Part shown: positions 33,010 through 63,982 of the stretch, one piece after another
Position numbering within the stretch: position 1 is the stretch's first letter
How the letters are laid out: every line of letters starts with the position of its first letter
Assembly (NCBI GenBank): GCA_025201805.1
Contig: MU619266.1
Coordinates: forward strand, 210,381 to 274,380
Direction of reading: 5' to 3'
From: Parasitella parasitica NRRL 2501
Lineage: Eukaryota; Fungi; Mucoromycota
DNA: 64,000 bases
Notes under the pieces: model-generated
What the model was told of the DNA's origin: nothing
What the model saw: only the letters and a program-made list of their open reading frames with translations
The model's database searches: none
Position numbers and translations under genes: made by a program

Positions 33010-33522
33010 TGTTGATCTGGCATAATCTAGGATAAGAGATCATAATAATGTACTTCTTTAATTAAAGAGTGGAGATTGTCCAATGATGTGTTGTTATACT
33101 TGTCGAAACAGGAGAATAAAGTCTTTGTTTCAAATCAGGAAGGTTATCTGTAACACAGATCTGTATGATATTGACAAACAATAAGGTACTGTCAGATCAA
33201 AGATCAATAACAGTTGCAGGACGTAAAATAATGAAATAATTAATAAACAATTATTTCCCTAAAAAAAAATCAAAGATCAATAACCTTGTAGTATAATAAT
33301 ACATCGTACCCTGTTAAGGATATGATGTTGCTTGCAAATTATTCTTATCGATTAGTATCGACTAGTATTTTAAATAAGTCACCAAAAATTTATGTTGTTG
33401 TAAAAAGTATAAATAGCAGATGCAAAGTTGAATCTTTAATAAAGTACTCTCAAGTCTTCGTATCTCGTTAATTCAACGTTTTATATGATACTTTTCTTAT
33501 TTCGATCTTGCAGATCTCAACA
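33010..33522 (+). mobile_element. Solo LTR A1
   Basis: TGTTGATCTG...CAGATCTCAACA termini, TATAAATAG and AATAAA near the 3' end, homologous over most of its length to A2. No clear TSD. Confidence 0.6.
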
Positions 33523-33541
33523 ATGAGCACATTTATCGCCT

Positions 33542-33951
33542 TGATCTGCCATAATTATAGATAGGAGATCATGGCAATGTACTTCAATTGAAGATTGAAG
33601 ATTGTCCAATGATGTGATGTGATACGCTTGTGTAAATTGGAGAATAAAGTCTCTGTTTCAAATCAAGAAGGTTATTCCTGTAAGTAACACAGATCTGAGC
33701 ACCAGGATAAAGGTTAAGGCTCTGTCAGATCAAAGACGTGTAGCCCTTGCTGTATAACCTCATATCGTACCCTGTCAAGTAGATTGTCACTGTGAATTAG
33801 TCTTGTCAATTAGTAATCTAAATAAGTCACCATAAATTTATGTAGTTGTAAAAAGTATAAATAGCAGATGCAATTTCGATCTTAAATAAAGTATCTTTAG
33901 TTTTCGTATCTCGTTAACCTTTGGTTTTTTTATTATCTTTTTGATCCAACA
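33542..33951 (+). mobile_element. Solo LTR A2 (same family as A1)
   Basis: Shares blocks with A1 (GATTGTCCAATGATGTG, GGAGAATAAAGTC, AAAAAGTATAAATAGCAGATGCAA). Ends GATCCAACA. CGCCT flanks the A2+B unit at 33537 and 34168. Confidence 0.6.
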
Positions 33952-34620: not shown

Positions 34621-36136
34621 TACACTATTTTCACTTAATGTTGTCGCACATTTGGGAGAACATGTGTCGCACATTTGGAAATAAGCTTGGCGTACTAAAT
34701 GAAAAAAAACTTGGCGCGCGCATAGACAAAAATTTGTCTTATTAAAAGGTTTAAATATTGGCGCATATCAAGTACTTGAGGGTTTACATTTTTCTTTGAA
34801 AATGAATGCTACTTTTATGCATTATGACGGTCAAGGAAATCTTTATAATGACGAAGGCATGGCAGTTACAATAGTGGAAATGGAGGTAGATGAGGAAGAT
34901 ACAAGAGCTCCCGACATTCGCAAGCATTACAAAGATTCAGAAAAGGAGCAGTAGTTGTTTACCTTGATCTATGAAAAGAGCATGAGTGCCAGAGCTGCAA
35001 ACAATAAAACTGCAGATCAACCCACGCACAGCACAGCGATGGTTTAAAAAAACGATCAAGAGAATCCACAGACATATATTGCAAGGAAAGAAGGTAGTGG
35101 AAGACCTGCGGGTAGACCTGGGTTACTTGACGATAGCCACAAAAAATTTATTGTCGATTTAGTGGACGATCAGCCCTCCCTAGTATTAAATCAAATGATG
35201 GAGAATCTGACAGCGTCATTTATCGAATTAGAAATATCCAAAACGGCTCTCTACTATTTTGTCACTAAAAATTGCAATATTAGTCTGAAGAGAGCTCCTT
35301 TTCACTCAGTAGATCGTAATAGTCTTGAAAAGATCAAGGAACGAAAGGAGTGGGTAGAAAAATGGATGGACACAGACATCGACTATATGAGCAACTGTGT
35401 ATTCATCGATGAAGCTGCAATTTACATCAACATGAAGCGAACTTTTGCATGGTCAAAAGTAGAGACTAGGGCAGTAGTCAAAGTGCCAAAAACAAAGGCA
35501 AAAACAACAACCATCTTGGGAGCACCATCAGCTCAAGGCGTTGTCAACATTAAAGTAAGACGGCCTCGAGTGCTGCCTTTTTCGAAGAAGAGGAAAACTG
35601 CTGGATCAAGTGGGTCTTCCCAAAAGCAAAGCAGAGGCACTGTTACTGGTCATTATTTCAATTTCTTGAATGACACGATGGATGTCATGGACAAATTTCC
35701 AGATGTTTTTAAGGACAATTACTTGATAATGGACAACGCCCCGATTCACATAAATGAAGATATCAAAAGTGTTATAGAAGGGCGTGGATATAGATGTGTC
35801 TATCTTTTTCCCTATTCACCTGAGCTCAATCCAACCGAGCAGTTTTGGTCCGTTTGCAAAAGCAAACTAAAAAGGGAGAGGCTTTTAGAAGAAGAAGCGC
35901 TTTCATCGAAAATCGCCGATGCATGCAATCAAATTCTTCTCAATGATCTCAAAGGATTCTGCAAATATTCTATCGATAGATTTAATGATTCCTTGCAAGA
36001 GAAGCCTCTTTAAAAATAAACCATAAACGTCGCATTTGTCGCATACAACTTATACGCCATCTTTTCTTCCAAATGTTTTAAAATGTGCGACAAATTTCTT
36101 TCAAAGAGTGCGACAACATTAAGTCAAAATAGTGTA
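34621..36136 (+). mobile_element. Tc1/IS630-type DD34E DNA transposon, left copy (coordinates include TA flanks); 5' part of transposase disrupted
   Basis: TIR TACACTATTTTCACTTAATGTTGTCGCAC at both ends (1 mismatch at the inner end). Catalytic motifs FIDEA, MDNAPIH, SPELNPTE with 34 residues between D and E. ATG at 34802, in-frame TAG ~34952, frameshifts in the HTH region. Confidence 0.95.
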
Positions 36137-36419
36137 CTTGATAGTTTAATGGGACAAGAAGAACCAACTGTTTATTATATATATATATATATATATAATG
36201 GTTAATACAGAGAACCAATTACGTGATGGGGACAATTATCAATTGTTGGTTCAGGATGATAAAATATAAATAAGGATTGAAATGAAATGAAATGACTAGA
36301 CTTGAGCGATTTGATAGTTATAATCAATGAAATAGTAGTAATGATAATTAAAAGCTAGGGAAAAAGGGAATGGATAGAATATGAAGGGGACACATATATA
36401 CACATATAAAAAGAGAGAG

Positions 36420-38413
36420 TTACTCCTGGAAGTGCTCCAAGTCTTCCCAGCATGCCCGGATGTACTGTTCATCGTCTGCTTCTTCAAGATCTTTGATTGC
36501 AGCTTCTATCTTATTCATAATTCTGCCCTTTCTTTCACTTGTCTCCCACTCTTTTGTTGCTGATGAATCTGACGATGATTGGGATGATTGGGATGATTGT
36601 AAATCTGTGTCAGGAGAGTCCTCTCGGAAAGTATTAAGAGAGGTGGAATTATTCAGATAGTTTAAATCATCTTGCAAAGCTATTTCGCACATTACTGTAA
36701 TCTTTTTAAGATTGAGGAGGACATGACGCTAAAGCAGAATGCAAGTTTTAGAACGTTGATTAAAACCAGATAAATTACAAGACTTACGAAAAGAGACAGT
36801 ATGGTAGTAATATAGTCAGCCAATTGCGAACCAGAGCCGTTGTTTGGAATGCTTGTTTCCTTCTTCACATAATGTAACAGACGATCATCAATTAATTTGG
36901 TTCCGTATATGCGAAGAGTCAGCTTGTTGAAATGACATGAGATAGATTCAATGTAATACGAGCATTCTTTGTAGGGGAGTAGGGTCAGCCAATACTTCAA
37001 TGAGCTGCTTCTCACGAGATCTGCCTTTTCGATGTCATTTTCCGATTTCTTTTCCTTTGGTTTATCCTCGCAGAACAACTGTTCGAAAAACCTGTCATTA
37101 GAGTTGGACTCTAAAATGAAATCAAGTCTACAATTTTTTTGTTCTGTGGGCAATTGCTTTAACTCCTTCAGAGTCTTGATTATCACAGATTCGCATTCAG
37201 CACTACAAGGAAAAAATGAGAAGTTGAGCAACTGCGTGATTGGAGTCATTTAGAAATCCTTACCGTTTGCTTTCAAAGAGATTGCTCGACAGAAATAAGA
37301 GATCAAATGCCTCACTATACACATTTACTCTATACCAGCATTCATTGTGATCCCTCTTCAAGTGATCATGTTTATGCAAGACAATACTATTGGAATAACG
37401 CGATTAAAAAAAAGAGACATGCTAGAATCAATATCCTATCCAAGTACTTACAACTTCTCCACCAGGATTTTGATAAAAACTAGTTCATCAGCACTTTCAA
37501 TAACACTAATTGATTCAACACTTTCAATAAAATCGTCCATTTTTTTTGCTTCGGATATTTTCTTTAACAGTGCATGCTCTTCAGCCTTAAGTAGCGGGAT
37601 AAGCAATTCATCCAGCTTCTTCGTGATCCTATTGGTTATAGCTTGTAATCTTCGAGGGATAATGAAGCTTTGTCTAAAATCAAGGATATCCTTCAAACCA
37701 CTTTAAAAATGTCAATAAAAGTTGGCTGACTATCTAAGTGTACGCTTCAACTTACCAACTATCCACAAGTAAAGCAGCTTGTTTGTAATGACTCAATCCC
37801 TTGAAGTCTTTAGGCATGATTTTTCTTCTTCTCTTTACAGCAGATGATGATGGTGGTGGTGTGGCGACAACAGCAGTAGCAGCCAATGGTGATGATGAAG
37901 AGGCGATAGCACCAGACGACGCACCGATTTGATCTGTGATAGATGTCGTTAAACGACTCTTGGCGGAAGCCTCTGATTGCTAGTTTATGGATCAACATAG
38001 TCAGATTAATAAAGCTACAAGCAATATTAAAAACTTGCTTTCTCCACATTGGCTTCAATTAACAAACTTGCAGGTCTTGACTTCAAAACACTATCAACAT
38101 TACTGTAAAGCATATTCGCTCTTGAAATGACAAAAGGTTTACATTTGGTGTCATTTATCTTGAGTTTCCAGACATCAAAAAGCAATTCCTTTAGTATAAC
38201 CATCTCGTTGGGTCCATTGATAAGATGAAAAGAGCGAGAGACATAAAACAACAAATTCATGTTGGACCAGTTTTTATAACTAGTTTTGGAAACATGTTCG
38301 AATAGTAGTTGCACAATATCCTCCTTTGGAACTATTCATTTTTCAGTAACTATTATTCGTGAGTTTACTTCAGAATATTTACCTTCTACAAGCAGTTGCT
38401 TGGTGTCAGCCAT
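36420..38413 (-). CDS. PD-(D/E)xK (restriction-endonuclease-like) nuclease candidate, 7 exons, 547 aa
   Basis: Exons 38413-38383, 38331-38039, 37979-37756, 37700-37452, 37386-37264, 37202-36788, 36728-36420 join into an open 1644-nt frame (intron 2 is GC-AG). Motifs HNECWYRVNVY, RAECES, CRLDFIL, EQLFCEDK, DIEK; NLS-like KRRRK. Confidence 0.72.
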
Positions 38414-38560
38414 GATGCGATGATAGTAAATGAGTTGAAAGCTTTGCGAAAGGAACAAAACACGAGAAATGATGACGTAAATAACTTCATAAAAAAAAAT
38501 CGCCTTTTCTTTTGGGGGCTCTTTATCTCTCGACTATTGCAGGTAATGTTATAAACGCTT

Positions 38561-38853
38561 GTAGTGGACTAGGGCTTTCCATCTTGCTAGGTGATAGTTA
38601 TGGCCGTGTATCATAGATCACTCCCTAGTCAAACATTTCACTTCCCGGCTGCATCTGTGGAGCGTAATTGCTTGGAGATAGCATAAACCGTGTCTTGGAG
38701 GAAAGTGTCCCATTCACCTACCTGAGTGATAGTTATGGCCGTGTATCATAGATCACTCCTCAGGTAGGCATGGTAGTGTGAAGGTCTCACCCGTGGGGCG
38801 TAATTGCTTAGGGGTAGAGTAGCAGGCGCACTACCGAATGCTTACTTCACTAC
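38561..38853 (+). ncRNA. Candidate structured ncRNA with two repeated three-way-junction domains
   Basis: Terminal stem GTAGTGGA/TTCACTAC. Identical 34-nt hairpin at 38591-38624 and 38726-38759. Repeated GTGG(A/G)GCGTAATTGCTT hairpin. Flanking stems differ in sequence but keep pairing. G-U wobbles favour the + strand. Expression is not shown by the sequence. Confidence 0.65.
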
Positions 38854-39013
38854 TTTATTGATAATATGAGTTGAACTGTGCTAACCCAATCTTTATACAT
38901 ATATATATGAACATGATAACACTATATTGGATTGAGGCGTAATCTGCGAAAAAACGTTAGTGAACAAGCATTATATACTTTTCTATTGGCTTTTCGGTGT
39001 ATTGTGTGTCTGG

Positions 39014-39150
39014 TCATTTGTAAGCGATCGAACTTTTAGAATGTCTGTTTCCAAGGTGTTTAGCTATGGTATCCCAATATGCTGGCATGGATTCTCGCTG
39101 CTGTAATTTTTGCTTGTAAATTTGGTCGAATGTTTTTGAAGTAGATAGGC
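39014..39150 (-). pseudogene. Myb/SANT-like fragment
   Basis: Minus-strand frame reads YWDTIAKHLGNRHSKSSIAYK* with TGA where Myb repeats have Trp. Confidence 0.35.
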
Positions 39151-39238
39151 ATGCATACACAATTAAAAACAAAGTTTAATGTTAAGCTCAAAAGCGTGAG
39201 TTATAGACACGGTATTTTATGTAGTGGTGCAAGTGCAG

Positions 39239-40804
39239 TACACTATTATTTGGTTGACCATGACATAAATCAACTATATTTTCACTTAATGTTGTCGCAC
39301 TCTTTGAAAGAAATTTGTCGCACATTTTAAAACATTTGGAAGAAAAGATGGCGTATAAGTTGTATGCGACAAATGCGACGTTTATGGTTTATTTTTAAAG
39401 AGGCTTCTCTTGCAAGGAATCATTAAATCTATCGATAGAATATTTGCAGAATCCTTTGAGATCATTGAGAAGAATTTGATTGCATGCATCGGCGATTTTC
39501 GATGAAAGCGCTTCTTCTAAAAGCCTCTCCCTTTTTAGTTTGCTTTTGCAAACGGACCAAAACTGCTCGGTTGGATTGAGCTCAGGTGAATAGGGAAAAA
39601 GATAGACACATCTATATCCACGCCCTTCTATAACACTTTTGATATCTTCATTTATGTGAATCGGGGCGTTGTCCATTATCAAGTAATTGTCCTTAAAAAC
39701 ATCTGGAAATTTGTCCATGACATCCATCGTGTCATTCAAGAAATTGAAATAATGACCAGTAACAGTGCCTCTGCTTTGCTTTTGGGAAGACCCACTTGAT
39801 CCAGCAGTTTTCCTCTTCTTCGAAAAAGGCAGCACTCGAGGCCGTCTTACTTTAATGTTGACAACGCCTTGAGCTGATGGTGCTCCCAAGATGGTTGTTG
39901 TTTTTGCCTTTGTTTTTGGCACTTTGACTACTGCCCTAGTCTCTACTTTTGACCATGCAAAAGTTCGCTTCATGTTGATGTAAATTGCAGCTTCATCGAT
40001 GAATACACAGTTGCTCATATAGTCGATGTCTGTGTCCATCCATTTTTCTACCCACTCCTTTCGTTCCTTGATCTTTTCAAGACTATTACGATCTACTGAG
40101 TGAAAAGGAGCTCTCTTCAGACTAATATTGCAATTTTTAGTGACAAAATAGTAGAGAGCCGTTTTGGATATTTCTAATTCGATAAATGACGCTGTCAGAT
40201 TCTCCATCATTTGATTTAATACTAGGGAGGGCTGATCGTCCACTAAATCGACAATAAATTTTTTGTGGCTATCGTCAAGTAACCCAGGTCTACCCGCAGG
40301 TCTTCCACTACCTTCTTTCCTTGCAATATATGTCTGTGGATTCTCTTGATCGTTTTTTTAAACCATCGCTGTGCTGTGCGTGGGTTGATCTGCAGTTTTA
40401 TTGTTTGCAGCTCTGGCACTCATGCCCTTTTCATAGATCAAGGTAAACAACTACTGCTCCTTTTCTGAATCTTTGTAATGCTTGCGAATGTCGGGAGCTC
40501 TTGTATCTTCCTCATCTACCTCCATTTCCACTATTGTAACTGCCATGCCTTCGTCATTATAAAGATTTCCTTGACCGTCATAATGCATAAAAGTAGCATT
40601 CATTTTCAAAGAAAAATGTAAACCCTCAAGTACTTGATATGCGCCAATATTTAAACCTTTTAATAAGACAAATTTTTGTCTATGCGCGCGCCAAGTTTTT
40701 TTCATTTAGTACGCCAAGCTTATTTCCAAATGTGCGGCATTGTTCTTCCAAATGTGCGACATGTTTATTCAAAGAGTGCGACAACATTAAGTGAAAATAG
40801 TGTA
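39239..40804 (-). mobile_element. Tc1/IS630-type DD34E DNA transposon, right copy (inverted); inner TIR interrupted
   Basis: Near-identical reverse complement of 34621-36136 (EE vs EEE indel, few substitutions). Outer TIR ends 40804. Inner TIR resumes at 39277. Confidence 0.95.
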
Positions 40805-59060: not shown

Positions 59061-61396
59061 ATGAAATTTGGAGCAGAACTTAATTCAAAAATCAATGAAG
59101 CATGGAGAGATTCGTATATTCATTACAATAAACTCAAAAGCCATCTTAAAATTCAGCATAGCAATGGTGTTTGGAGCACTCAAGATGACAAGGACTTTAT
59201 CAATCAAATAGAAATGGAACTGAAGAAGGTGTATGCATTTGTCCAAGTTCGTCAAAAGGCACTCATTAGCCGCATTGATTATTGCGAGTCTGTGCTAAGA
59301 GACTACAAGGAAGTACCAAAGACAAGAGCAACCGCCTATGATTCAGTAGCTGACAGCCTGGCTGAAATACTAATCGATGTGGATGATTTAGCCAAGTTTC
59401 ATGAACTCAACTTGGCAGGCTTTGAAAAGATTGTCAAGAAGCATGATAAATGGACTAGAGGAGATCTCACATCTTACTATTTTGGAAGGCTCTTGGATTT
59501 GTATCCTTTAGACAAGCAACGTTTTGATGTCATGATTGTACGTATCTCTGATATGCATGATTTATGTCGTCTTTATGGCAATGCGAGATCAATGCAAGCT
59601 TACAGTCAAGGTGGAGACCAAACTGCTTTTGAGAGAGCAACCAACAAGTACTGGATCCATCCGGATCATATCACTGAAGTGAAAGCAATAATCCTGCTAC
59701 ATCTCCCGGTGCATGTGTTTAACCAAAAGAAACAATATGAATCGAAAGACGCTGCTGTATCCAGCATATACTACGACAATGAAGATTTTGACTTGTATCA
59801 AGGACGTCTTGAGAGAGCTAAGGGCGCAGAAGCAATTCGTATCCGCTGGTATGGTCAAAGCGATGACCTTAATGACGATGTCTATATTGAAAGAAAAACA
59901 CATCATGCTGAATGGCTCAATGGTAAATCGGTTAAGGATCGATTTAGGCTAAAGGAATATCAAGTAAACGATTTTATGAGCGGCGCTTACTCTGCCGACA
60001 GCTTCAGAAAGGATCTCGAAAAGAAGGGAAAGCTAGACCAGATCTCCATTGGCGACAACCATTTTGTTGCAAAGGGTATCCAAAGCTCTGTCAAGACCAA
60101 AAACCTAAAGCCAATGTGTCGAGTATTCTATAACAGGACTGCATTCCAGTTGCCTGGAGACCAGCGTCTAAGAATCAGTCTAGATTCCAACTTGACGTTT
60201 ATCAAAGAAGACCACATGGACGGTAAACAGAGAAGATGCATGCCAGATAAGACAGACAACTGGCGAAGGCCTGATGTAGGCATAGATCATCCATTTCGCC
60301 ATGTCGATGATACAGATATCTTGCGATTCCCTTATGCCATTTTAGAAACCAAAATACAAAGCCATCTAGGCCAGGAAGCACCTGCTTGGTTGACATCGCT
60401 GCTAAACAGTCATTTAGTACATGAAGTACCTCGATTCTCCAAATACATACATGGTGCCAGCTACTTGTTTAAGGATAAAATACCTGTTATGCCATACTGG
60501 TTGGATCAGCTTATAGGTGACATCCGAAAGCCCATTACACCTAATGTCGGTTTATCTCGCTCCCAGAGCTTCAAGGCGCTCTTTAACGGGAAGCATAGAA
60601 GATCTTTGGCCTATGATGACTCTTTGAATATCTACACTGAATCCACAGCTAGTCCAGCGCCTCCTAAACAAAGCAGCAAAAAGACCAATTTGGGGTTGGA
60701 TGTAGGCGATGCAATGAGAAAGTCCAGCAAATTGACTCGAAAAGGGCAACCTGGAAACGTGCCTCATTTATCCATTAATTTCTCAAGCAGTACCATGCCT
60801 GAAACTACTACAACAGCTACTCCTGGCCGAGATATGATTTCAAGATTTTGGGCAAACAATAATTTTTCAGATGAAAAGAAAAAGGAGGACTATGCATCCT
60901 TACCAGCGACACCAGCAAGCGGTTTTATAGAGAGAGGCACATCAGGTGGCAAGCGAAAGAGAGGAGGCTTGATAAAGAAGATGGATCCCAAAGCCTTCTT
61001 TGCCAACGAAAGAACTTTTATTGCTTGGCTACAGTTCTGCGCACTGCTTCTGACAGTTTCTTTAAATTTGCTAAATACCGGTGATAGAATCTCTCGAGTT
61101 GTGGGGGCATGTTTTATTGTATTTTCGTCCATCATTTCAATGTAAGCGACACAGCTATATATGATATCATGTTAGACTAAATTCTGTGTGTTTGTTTTTA
61201 TAGTTATGCTCTGGTTCGCTTCCAGTTGAGAGCTTACCAGATGAGAACCGGAAGGGGCATGATCAACATGGAAGATATATATGGCCCAGTTTTGTTATGC
61301 ATTCTGCTCGTCACTGCTTTAGGCATTAACTTTTACCTTCGAGCCCCTCTTTTATTCTCTTCGCCAGATCAGTTAAATGTTGAGCCTTCTGAGTAA
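59061..61396 (+). CDS. VTC4: Vacuolar polyphosphate polymerase, SPX-VTC-DUF202 (Vtc4-like)
   Basis: MKFG SPX start, KIVKKHDK, TNKYW, RIRWY, ERKTH, LETK, FSKY, PKAFFANERTF; last exon from 61204. Confidence 0.9.
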
Positions 61397-61527
61397 ACAT
61401 GACCCTTATTTACTATTATCCTATTATTATTACTCATTACTTAATATTATCATTAAAACTGCTTGTTAAAATCAATATAAAATGGCAATGTTTTATCCAG
61501 GTGCTAGAATTTTTTCTTTAAGTTATC

Positions 61528-63982
61528 ATGAAATTTGGAAACTATTTGAAAGAACACATGTTGAGTCCGTGGAGGCTCGAATACATCCAATACGACCTGT
61601 TAAAAATGGAACTAAAGAATAGGCAACTCGATCATGAATGGAATCAACAAGACGAAACCGCATTTATCGAGCTTTTTGCTAATGAAAAGAACAAGGTAGT
61701 GCAGTTTATCCATAATTTTAATCACCAGCTTGTATCTCGCATAAAATACAGTAAACATTTACTACAAAATGCTCGAAAAAACAATGTGGACATTCCTCCA
61801 GATGTGCGTCTCAGTCAATTGCCATCGATGAAGGATTCAACTTCTGCTTTTCTCAACAATTTGGATGATGCCTTGATTGAAATACTGTTTGATATTCATG
61901 ATTTCTCTACTTTTATTTACCTGAATCATCTTGGGTTTGAAAAGATATTGAAAAAGCACAAGAAATGGGTGCATATTAACCAACGCGAGGATCATGCATT
62001 GAAATATCACCATGACATTGCATCGCTTGAAATAAATCACAGTTACTTGTATTACAAGCAAGTCTCAGCACTACGGTATGAATGCCAGCACGAGGTCTAC
62101 AAGGAAAGCCAGATAACTTACAATGAGCTGCATCAAATTCCTCTGGTTGTGCCTGAACGAAGATGCAATAAATACTGGGTTCACAAAGATCATATATCTG
62201 AAGTTACTGCTATTCTTTGCATGTACAGCTATATTATTCCAAAATCAACCAGCCAAGATATATCCATGTCCAACTTGTATTTCGATAATGATTATATGAG
62301 TATACATGGGGATAGAATCGAAGAAAAAGAGGATTTCCAAGTTATTAAATGCAAAAGGTAAATTTGAAATACTCTGTTTACAGTTGTTTCTGTGCTTGTA
62401 TGTATGCTCAAGCTCTTTGGTTGTTTTTTTTCATACAACTATGATAGATTTGGCTCATTTTCAAATGAATCCGTGTATTATTTTGAACATGAAGTTCACA
62501 ATAGCTCTTATTCAGATGACATATCAAGCAAATTCAGATGTGAAATCAGCACGAACAAGATGAATGATTTTTGTCAAGGAAATTACTCCCTTACAAGTAG
62601 CGCAGAGGATGATGAGATAGATGAAAAAGAAGCTATAAAGAAGCTTGATTTAAAAAGCACTAGAGCTGTCGCAAATGCAGTTCAAGATGGATTATTTTCC
62701 CGATCTTTAAAACCAATATTACAATGCAATTATAATCGGCTTACGTTTGAACTACCAGATAATGATGGCAAACTGATATTCACGCTTGATACAGACATTG
62801 AATTTTGTTCACAATCCAGTGCACAAGATTTTGTCAGTAGGCCTAATGAAAATCAATGCATGGCGTTTCCTTATGCTGTTTTGGAAGTAAAAATCTCGAA
62901 AGACATGAAAATGGACGATCCTTCTCTCCACTGGGTAAATGCATTTACGCAAAGGAGTAAACTTGTGCATGAAATCCCAAAGTTTTCCAAGTACATACAA
63001 GGAATGTCTCAAGTATTTCCGTGCCAGGGTCTCAAGAAACCTAGTTGGTTTGACTTGTATGAAAAGGGCATATCAGCTTCTGCCGAGCATAAAGGTCTTT
63101 CTCGCTCAAGAAGCCTCTGTCCACTTTTGAACGGCAAAAAGTTTCGCTCTAGCATCCCTTATTCCAATACAACATCCAGAACAAGCTACTCTTCTCAGAA
63201 GTATCACGACAGTTCCGTGAGATCAAGTCATACAAAATGTGAATATACCTCGTTATCGCTTCGTGTGCCCTCTGTTAATATCAATCTAGCTCGCAGTGCT
63301 GTCATTATACCAAACAAGTATGCCAAAATAGTACTCGACATGAATGAAAAAACCGAGATGCATTCACCTGCAATGGACAACAGCACAAAATCGTGCAGTT
63401 ATTATCCCAGATACAGTGGTAGCGTTGATTGGGAAAGTAACAGCAACAACAATTCTGCTGACAATCTTATTCTGGATCAAGCAGGATACCCAGTTATTTA
63501 CAAGGACCAGCCTCAATTATCATTCTATCACAACAGTACCAAAGGCTATGATATTGAAAAGAGTTCCGTTACTGGCACCAATTCAAACAAGAGAAAGAAA
63601 AAGATCAAGGTTAAGATTGAGCCTAAAGTTTTCTTTGCAAATGAAAGAACGTTCCTCATGGCTTCAGTTCTGTGCCTTGCTGCTGACGGTTGCTTTGAAT
63701 CTACTTAATTTTGGAGACAGAATCTCTCGTATCTGCGGTGGTGTATTTTTGTCTATCTCAATGCTCTTAGCATTTTATGCTCTCGCAAGGTTTCAATATA
63801 GAGCCTATCAATTGAGAAATCTACATCAAAAGGGTCGATTCGACGATGTCTACGGCCCAGTTGTGTTGTGTTTATTAATTGTTGCTGCCTTGACAATTAA
63901 TTTTTGGCTACGATTTAAAGATTTACCAAGTGAGAGTGACCAAAATACTTATTTGGGAAATAAAACAGCTGAATGGCATTAG
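61528..63982 (+). CDS. Divergent VTC paralog (SPX-VTC-DUF202) with apparent frameshift near 63655
   Basis: MKFG, KILKKHKK, CNKYW, LEVK, FSKY, PKVFFANERTF. The continuation WLQFCALLL is in another frame. Confidence 0.8.

Follow-up and report, generated by a model that had tools for sequence, protein, structure and literature searches.

A repeated-domain noncoding RNA beside a restriction-fold nuclease-like gene on transposons of Mucoromycota

The stretch of 64,000 nucleotides of Parasitella parasitica DNA analysed here (the window) contains, at 38561-38853, an element that an initial annotation, made from the letters alone, took for a novel noncoding RNA of two Y-shaped, covarying domains. Is this a real RNA, and what is its partner, if any? 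The element is a real, novel ncRNA of an undescribed family, transcribed and folded. The view of it as a lone ncRNA was incomplete: the RNA belongs to a nuclease-RNA cassette that had been missed. The RNA comprises the following parts.

38561-38853, + strand: structured core of the ncRNA, an outer stem around two Y-shaped three-way-junction domains (from fold and covariation)
38561 and 38846-38853, + strand: arms of the outer stem (from the motif check)
38575-38705, + strand: domain 1, with closing stem 38575/38700, hairpin A 38584-38632 and hairpin B tip 38650-38683
38711-38840, + strand: domain 2, with closing stem CAUUC/GAAUG 38711/38836, hairpin A 38717-38768 and hairpin B 38772-38835
38599-38624, + strand: first copy of the most conserved motif; the second copy lies at 38734-38759

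Every motif previously listed for the element was recovered at its position. The most conserved motif of the RNA (38599-38624) consists of a 4-bp tip stem, a loop opening with CC, an invariant G-C pair and a CUC bulge on the 3' side. An identical 34-mer recurs with a period of 135, at 38591 and 38726, for which the chance probability is about 2e-13; hairpin B has its tip at 38657 and 38793, and the element is flanked by a TATAAA at 38550 and a reverse B-box-like motif at 38868-38876. Compared with shuffled controls, the + strand folds favourably (-101.7 kcal/mol, z -2.26, with 4 of 200 shuffles equally good), the - strand reaching -85.5 kcal/mol (z -1.65); the sense strand is the better folder at all 12 loci tested. 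Domain 2 and the outer stem prevail among the predicted structures, with pair probabilities of 0.6-1.0. For domain 1 of the window copy the lowest-energy fold differs, the comparative structure costing about 6 kcal/mol, and pair probabilities do not exceed 0.02 in hairpin A1 and its closing stem. Folding z-scores of the homologues are weak (-4.0 to +1.4). Support for the structure comes from covariation, not from folding energy.

The covariation is extensive. Across 16 family-1 domains 89% of the cells pair, and two-sided changes are seen in 18 of the 28 pairs; none of 500 shuffles reaches these values, and sliding the register lowers pairing to 41-52%. The shuffle test is inflated by relatedness, so that more weight falls on the control with slid registers and on the range of seven genera; the pairing figures are a tool count, a few closing stems having been mis-registered by automatic helix picking. 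The tip stem is paired in 100% of the 16 domains. The invariant columns of the alignment are one G-C pair, the CUC bulge and the CC opening loop A. The earlier proposal that the conserved tips are protein-binding modules is plausible, and we regard them as candidate sites.

Members of the RNA family contain one to four Y-domain units of about 130 nt, usually two, with a period of 115-194 nt. Nested three-way junctions account for the covariation, and the pseudoknot of type III antitoxins was not encountered. At six other loci the domains within a dimer are 92-97% identical, and the differences are almost confined to the closing stems, which are pyrimidine-rich/purine-rich in domain 1 and CAUUC/GAAUG in domain 2. 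In the window, too, the differences between domains fall in compensated stems. A distinct closing stem for each domain means that the copies can fold separately. Judged from sequence, near-identical domains with their own closing stems are the pattern of repeated binding sites and not of spacers. These observations speak against the earlier idea that the variable loops are guides, as does the genome, where a decayed paralogue is the sole match to the element or its 3' tail. A kissing pair between loop A and hairpin B (CC with GG) is possible and is left unclaimed because its register shifts between lineages. In Rhizopus stolonifer (L048:5259-5641) the tip of hairpin B is itself duplicated within each domain (period 194).

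Could the element belong to a known class? Rfam gave no match at the gathering threshold for the window element, and relaxed searches, with E up to 10 for the window element and up to 1 in the case of four homologues, returned chance matches only; no score for tRNA, snRNA, SRP, RNase P/MRP, snoRNA or ribozymes came near the threshold. A descriptor scan for HDV-like ribozymes, over both strands of seven loci and the whole window transcript, yielded 0 matches. Motifs of hammerhead and hairpin ribozymes, SECIS, IRE, H/ACA and C/D boxes are absent or unconserved, partly as judged by inspection. Telomerase RNA is ruled out by the multi-copy, non-syntenic occurrence of the family and its lack of a conserved template, and a small ORF inside the fold (28-31 codons) is lost in domain 2 and in the homologues. 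An antisense relation of the type I toxin-antitoxin kind was also rejected, cognate complementary runs (8-11 nt) being no longer than non-cognate ones. Exact-pattern scans of JGI metagenomes found no match to the RNA, and the literature searched, largely outside the subscription journals, contained no account of such an RNA or of a nuclease-RNA pairing.

The stretch is present in twenty public sequencing runs, six of them RNA. Contigs of three RNA runs (X7, X15 and X17) span about 38484/38595 to 39146-39212 with no splice joint, and define two further features.

38484-39212, + strand (presumed): host transcript of the RNA, about 700 nt, unspliced (RNA contigs X7, X15, X17)
38414-38483, no strand: divergent intergenic stretch from the nuclease start to the RNA transcript (RNA coverage gap 38352-38453)

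The contigs carry no strand; the + strand was assigned from the G-U pairs, the gene geometry and the better folding of the sense strand. ORF lists contain no frame of 60 codons in the transcript. Contig depth is about 1000 for the RNA versus 119-239 for the neighbouring nuclease gene (X7, X15), an excess of 4-9 times over the nuclease mRNA, which is a rough measure and not a true level. X15 is an oligo-dT library whose contig starts at or before 38484, upstream of the TATAAA. The fold is thus the 5' part of a probably polyadenylated transcript of about 700 nt, which continues for 300-350 nt 3' of the fold into locus-specific sequence. Depth over the piece between the repeats exceeds that over the 3' piece by a factor of 1.6-2.3 (X7, X17), which hints at a stable processed core. 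The stretch 38414-38483 is a probable shared promoter. With these contigs and covariation, and no match in Rfam, the description of a novel covarying ncRNA of two Y-shaped domains stands. The suggestion of Pol III transcription, drawn from the TATAAA and the B-box-like motif, does not: the transcript begins upstream of the former, in an oligo-dT library, and runs past the end of the fold by 300-350 nt, and in two other organisms a 5-nt deletion falls in the B-box-like motif, which homologous loci lack. An intron-encoded RNA or spliceosomal 3' processing (donor-like motif at 38543, branch-like motif at 38879) was rejected, as the contigs are jointless and the motifs are missing elsewhere. In run X11 (window 36210-39260) another organism's DNA carries the RNA gene at about 97% identity and gives no nuclease-gene contig at 80% likeness; it may be an orphan RNA, though holes prove nothing.

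Head-to-head with the RNA lies its presumptive partner.

36420-38413, - strand: PD-(D/E)xK nuclease-like gene, intact and spliced (from RNA contigs, exon frames, family and fold)

Five introns are seen in RNA contigs, one of them GC-AG, and the RNA-supported exons comprise 535 codons with zero stops; the motif D..EDK lies in the exon 36788-37202. The GC-AG intron (37980-38038) is spliced in run X15 and retained in a contig of X7. The window nuclease was searched exon by exon, and the fold model is that of a full-length homologue. The catalytic exon matches 77 homologues, the named ones all from Mucoromycota and Mortierella, and the family occupies about 12 loci in its own genome. The homologue model (pLDDT 88) best matches restriction endonucleases: BpuSI with Z 9.5 (rmsd 3.5, 152 aligned) and DrdV with Z 9.0. 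Mitoribosomal proteins with a restriction-like fold rank second and third in the fold search. The top rows of Foldseek are also restriction enzymes, not significant, and the model has a TM of 0.44-0.47 to the PDDEXK_12 cluster. Residues D294, E310 and K312 are kept in 16-17 of 18 full-length members. The partner, as modelled, combines the restriction fold with the D and (D/E)xK residues of the PD-(D/E)xK superfamily, and this protein of about 500 residues with a basic, NLS-like patch is predicted to have nuclease activity. Searches of Pfam, PADLOC, NCBIfam and PDB sequences gave no match for the family; the helical region ahead of the nuclease domain found no telling match, and the protein has no recognisable RNA-binding domain.

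Is the vicinity of the two genes fortuitous? A model of four domains (R1: the window's two and a decayed paralogue on contig C35) gives genome-wide, apart from its own copies, significant matches at C14 and C8 only, each next to a nuclease paralogue. A wider model (R2) brings the RNA loci of the genome to eight: four have a nuclease within 8 kb, and four are orphans. The linked loci are C30, C14, C8 and, loosely, C61, where the RNA is 7.4 kb from the nuclease with host genes between. That 4 of 8 family loci should lie near one of about 12 nuclease loci has a binomial probability of 7e-6, calculated without the window. Control DNA contains almost no tandem units of this type. Orphan RNAs that outlast their nuclease are found on C35, C46, C42, C13 and C201. 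Beside two other nuclease paralogues, C36 and C209, lies RNA of a sister family that shares the hairpin-A tip and the CUC bulge. At the end of C35 a seemingly intact, distant-clade nuclease has no homologous RNA in the flanking DNA examined; an end-to-start join of C35, which would pair its RNA and nuclease, was rejected for lack of overlap.

Other elements were observed around these loci. On C115 (L032:2916-3161) a third, sequence-unrelated tandem Y-shaped dimer (period 126, one tip motif common to both hairpins) lies head-to-head with a distant-clade nuclease. A tandem unit on C209 (L031:5149-5492; period 188, 93% identical, AT-rich) occurs 1 kb past the family-2 RNA, and a common non-coding element (L033:444-796 and L034:4680-4867), partly duplicated in L033 (period 159), is found downstream of two nuclease loci. 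The C46 dimer reproduces a segment of the C61 locus that also takes in the 3' end of one host gene (L044:6435-8269, L046:4809-10000), and an inserted element splits the copy.

In other species homologous RNA lies at 8 of 11 genomic loci of nuclease homologues, being found beside the gene in Mucor ambiguus, M. lusitanicus, R. stolonifer, R. microsporus, Cokeromyces, Benjaminiella and Helicostylum. The orientation is mostly head-to-head and twice same-strand; the RNA block follows the gene in Helicostylum and precedes it in Benjaminiella. Of the three RNA-less loci, one encodes a protein devoid of both catalytic Asp and Lys, another is a gene call truncated at the 5' end, and the third is a distant-clade member that adjoins an unrelated hairpin array. 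The Lichtheimia nuclease has no homologous RNA in the flanking DNA examined. In L. ramosa (L054:3674-4184) about 11 hairpin repeats of ~46 nt occur 1.8 kb upstream of the nuclease homologue; this array folds well on the divergent strand, and its layout resembles a type III antitoxin array. In M. lusitanicus Asn replaces the catalytic Asp of the nuclease, and the RNA is a decayed monomer only. The Fennellomyces nuclease is 50% identical to the C36 and C209 paralogues, and a four-unit sister-RNA array, predicted beforehand, was indeed found 2.2 kb away (E 1e-16 to 1e-18, 91% paired), an out-of-sample test that the pairing passed. Over 11 loci the identities between RNAs rise with those between the nucleases (Mantel rho 0.74, p 1e-4), a correlation that linkage alone can yield. 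Of the two partners the RNA is better conserved (97 vs 89%, 95 vs 90%). Subfamily-matched pairing persists across fungal families, different carriers and orientations.

The window cassette is a 3.1-kb cargo between inverted Tc1 elements (34621-40804) at one TA, and an empty insertion site is present in a related repeat at L010:268.

34621-36136, + strand: Tc1/mariner element, left arm of the composite transposon (DDE_3 match, inverted repeat, empty TA site L010:268)
39272-40804, - strand: Tc1/mariner element, right arm, inverted, about 100% identical over 1.4 kb

The 5' end of each transposase frame seems disrupted. In R. stolonifer and Cokeromyces the cassette lies between inverted arms of 1.0-1.1 kb that are 99% identical and have Tc1-type termini. 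These arms hold the last exon of the nuclease, so that the RNA transcript reads into an exon copy; a near-perfect copy of this exon is present 3' of the fold in both species and in R. microsporus. More generally, the cassettes at L048:4084-8642, L050:561-8750 and L049:4097-7830 are flanked by near-perfect inverted arms that measure 0.5-1.1 kb and contain the nuclease last intron and exon; the likeness of the arms is about 99% within a species but 70% from one species to another, and Tc1-type termini close two of them. Judging from these sequences, composite transposons with Tc1 ends spread the cassette as their cargo. At the DNA level the C8 cassette and that of R. microsporus are 89% identical (RNA 97%), far above the host-gene level between these genera (51-54% protein identity, best match), which points to horizontal transfer. 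Cassettes of different genera are 84-90% identical in DNA (L027 vs L049, L051 vs L052). Cassettes have probably moved between genera. The window also contains an AT-rich, imperfect tandem duplication (33056-33873, period about 450-530 nt) and two adjacent SPX-VTC polyphosphate-polymerase-like genes (59061-63708), and a VTC protein of the window is 88% identical to that of Mucor circinelloides.

What known system does this arrangement recall? The closest layout is that of type III toxin-antitoxin systems (ToxIN, CptIN, TenpIN; PMC6315513), in which a nuclease gene likewise lies beside a folded ncRNA of repeated units, on mobile DNA, with lineage-matched partners and RNA in excess. Those systems are bacterial and employ a ToxN-type endoribonuclease, whereas the fungal cassette is eukaryotic with a restriction fold. 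Tandem RNA units beside the putative toxin gene are common to both; a ToxN, CptN or TenpN toxin is not, as the fungal family matches nothing in Pfam, PADLOC, NCBIfam or PDB sequences. Type III repeats are short pseudoknots in one operon, with the antitoxin upstream, while the fungal RNA consists of ~130-nt Y domains encoded by a separate, mostly divergent gene, with no sign of the nuclease cutting the repeats. The Spok spore killers of Podospora (PMC6660238) are fungal selfish genes with a PD-(D/E)xK killing domain, mobile and transferred between species. In Spok, however, resistance resides in a kinase domain of the same protein; the fungal cassette is kinase-less, and a separate RNA is the candidate antidote. 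Restriction-fold nucleases thus act as killers in Spok drivers (PMC6660238) and in CRN/CR effectors (PMC5289972), which are similarly eukaryotic and of transposon origin. The Crinkler domain occurs in 17% of the members of one structural neighbour cluster of the nuclease. The fungal nuclease itself, nevertheless, has no Crinkler header, NTPase or kinase domain, and no RNA partner is described for the Crinkler effectors. Fanzor/TnpB (OMEGA) proteins are also transposon-borne nucleases, present in eukaryotes, with a structured ncRNA transcript entering flanking DNA. Their fold is RuvC rather than PD-(D/E)xK, their RNA overlaps the transposon end instead of forming a separate, usually divergent gene with repeated domains, and no target match for a guide of this kind was found for the fungal RNA in its own genome.

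Directly binding RNA restrains protein toxins in bacteria. Our preferred reading, which we hold tentatively and at slightly under an even chance, is that the RNA is an antitoxin that binds and silences the nuclease, like a type III system without being a member of that class. Each Y domain would bind one subunit of the nuclease, using the conserved tip of hairpin A and the CUC bulge, and the bound RNA would keep the enzyme inactive. A nucleus or cell without the RNA, whether by loss or from the start, would then face the nuclease, which may make the cassette addictive or selfish. In coenocytic hyphae, speculatively, the protein could spread in the common cytoplasm while the RNA antidote stays with the nucleus that produces it; such confinement would, equally speculatively, favour cassette-bearing nuclei. 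Travel on Tc1-ended composite transposons, probably between genera, would complete the cycle. The antidote role is favoured by the RNA excess, by the interchangeable repeated units (one to four), by the decay of the RNA beside a catalytically altered nuclease and by the lack of a guide-like or antisense segment. It is also favoured by the orphan RNAs outlasting the nuclease, as expected if the toxin must be lost first; these orphans would equally fit independence. Also to be counted against it are the co-divergence that linked passengers of one mobile unit show without interacting, the RNA-less nucleases of the C35 end and Lichtheimia, the 7.4 kb at C61 and the want of a recognisable RNA-binding domain.

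The same linkage and co-divergence could reflect an RNA that is an activating subunit or guide scaffold, its 3' sequence or a captured partner strand directing the cutting, which would serve either defence or the spread of the cassette itself. This is unlikely, though it deserves real weight: the transcript does run 300-350 nt past the fold into locus-specific sequence, which in R. stolonifer, R. microsporus and Cokeromyces is the near-perfect last-exon copy, and restriction-like folds do bind RNA in the mitoribosomal proteins that rank two and three in the fold search. Yet the RNA has no internal spacer (domains 92-97% identical in six loci), the window's 3' tail is without a match in its own genome, and targeting the nuclease's own exon would be self-destructive. 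We know of no RNA-guided enzyme of the PD-(D/E)xK fold in eukaryotes, and a literature search for one of restriction fold found none. The exon copy has been considered in another light, namely that the fold is a cis leader for a small protein antidote (the acidic C-terminal segment of the nuclease), or a protein-sensing regulator. In those three species the transcript enters a duplicated last intron and an exon starting with an in-frame ATG, and the duplicated exons are annotated as genes of 94-120 residues. However, no exon copy follows the RNA in the window, C14, C8, C61, Benjaminiella or Helicostylum, the window transcript has no ORF of 60 codons, the duplicated arms have Tc1-type termini in two species and look like transposition products, and no antisense match to the nuclease mRNA was found. 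We regard this possibility as quite improbable.

Might the RNA instead serve mobility, as a signal or scaffold for a restriction-fold protein that acts in transposition or recombination? In every species cassettes do lie at host loci that are unrelated, and they take several orientations; the likeness of the C8 cassette to that of R. microsporus (89% of DNA, against 51-54% for host proteins) would agree with it. The cassette itself, though, has neither common termini nor a target-site duplication, its visible ends being those of Tc1, and no reverse transcriptase, helicase or integrase lies nearby, so that we hold this role to be very unlikely. The least probable of all these readings is that RNA and nuclease are unrelated passengers of the same transposons. 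Half of the genome's RNA loci being orphans would suit it; against it stand the subfamily-matched pairing across fungal families, carriers and orientations, the purifying covariation of the RNA, which demands a function, and the near absence of such tandem units from control DNA.

It appears fairly likely that these loci are Mucoromycota-wide eukaryotic RNP cassettes, in which a restriction-fold nuclease is under the control of its own repeated-domain ncRNA, be it as an antitoxin and drive or as an RNA-programmed enzyme. To our knowledge, the pairing of an RNA antidote with a nuclease has so far been known only from bacteria, and eukaryotic RNA-guided nucleases are limited to a few folds. If true, the cassette would be the first eukaryotic RNA-antitoxin addiction system or nucleus-level drive, or else a new RNA-programmed nuclease of a fold for which no RNA guide is known. 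Restriction-fold nucleases with matched, covarying RNAs across fungal families would represent a new kind of RNA-controlled enzyme, in a compact two-part system testable in yeast or in vitro. For the coenocytic moulds that carry it, the cassette would offer a mechanism for selfish inheritance among nuclei.
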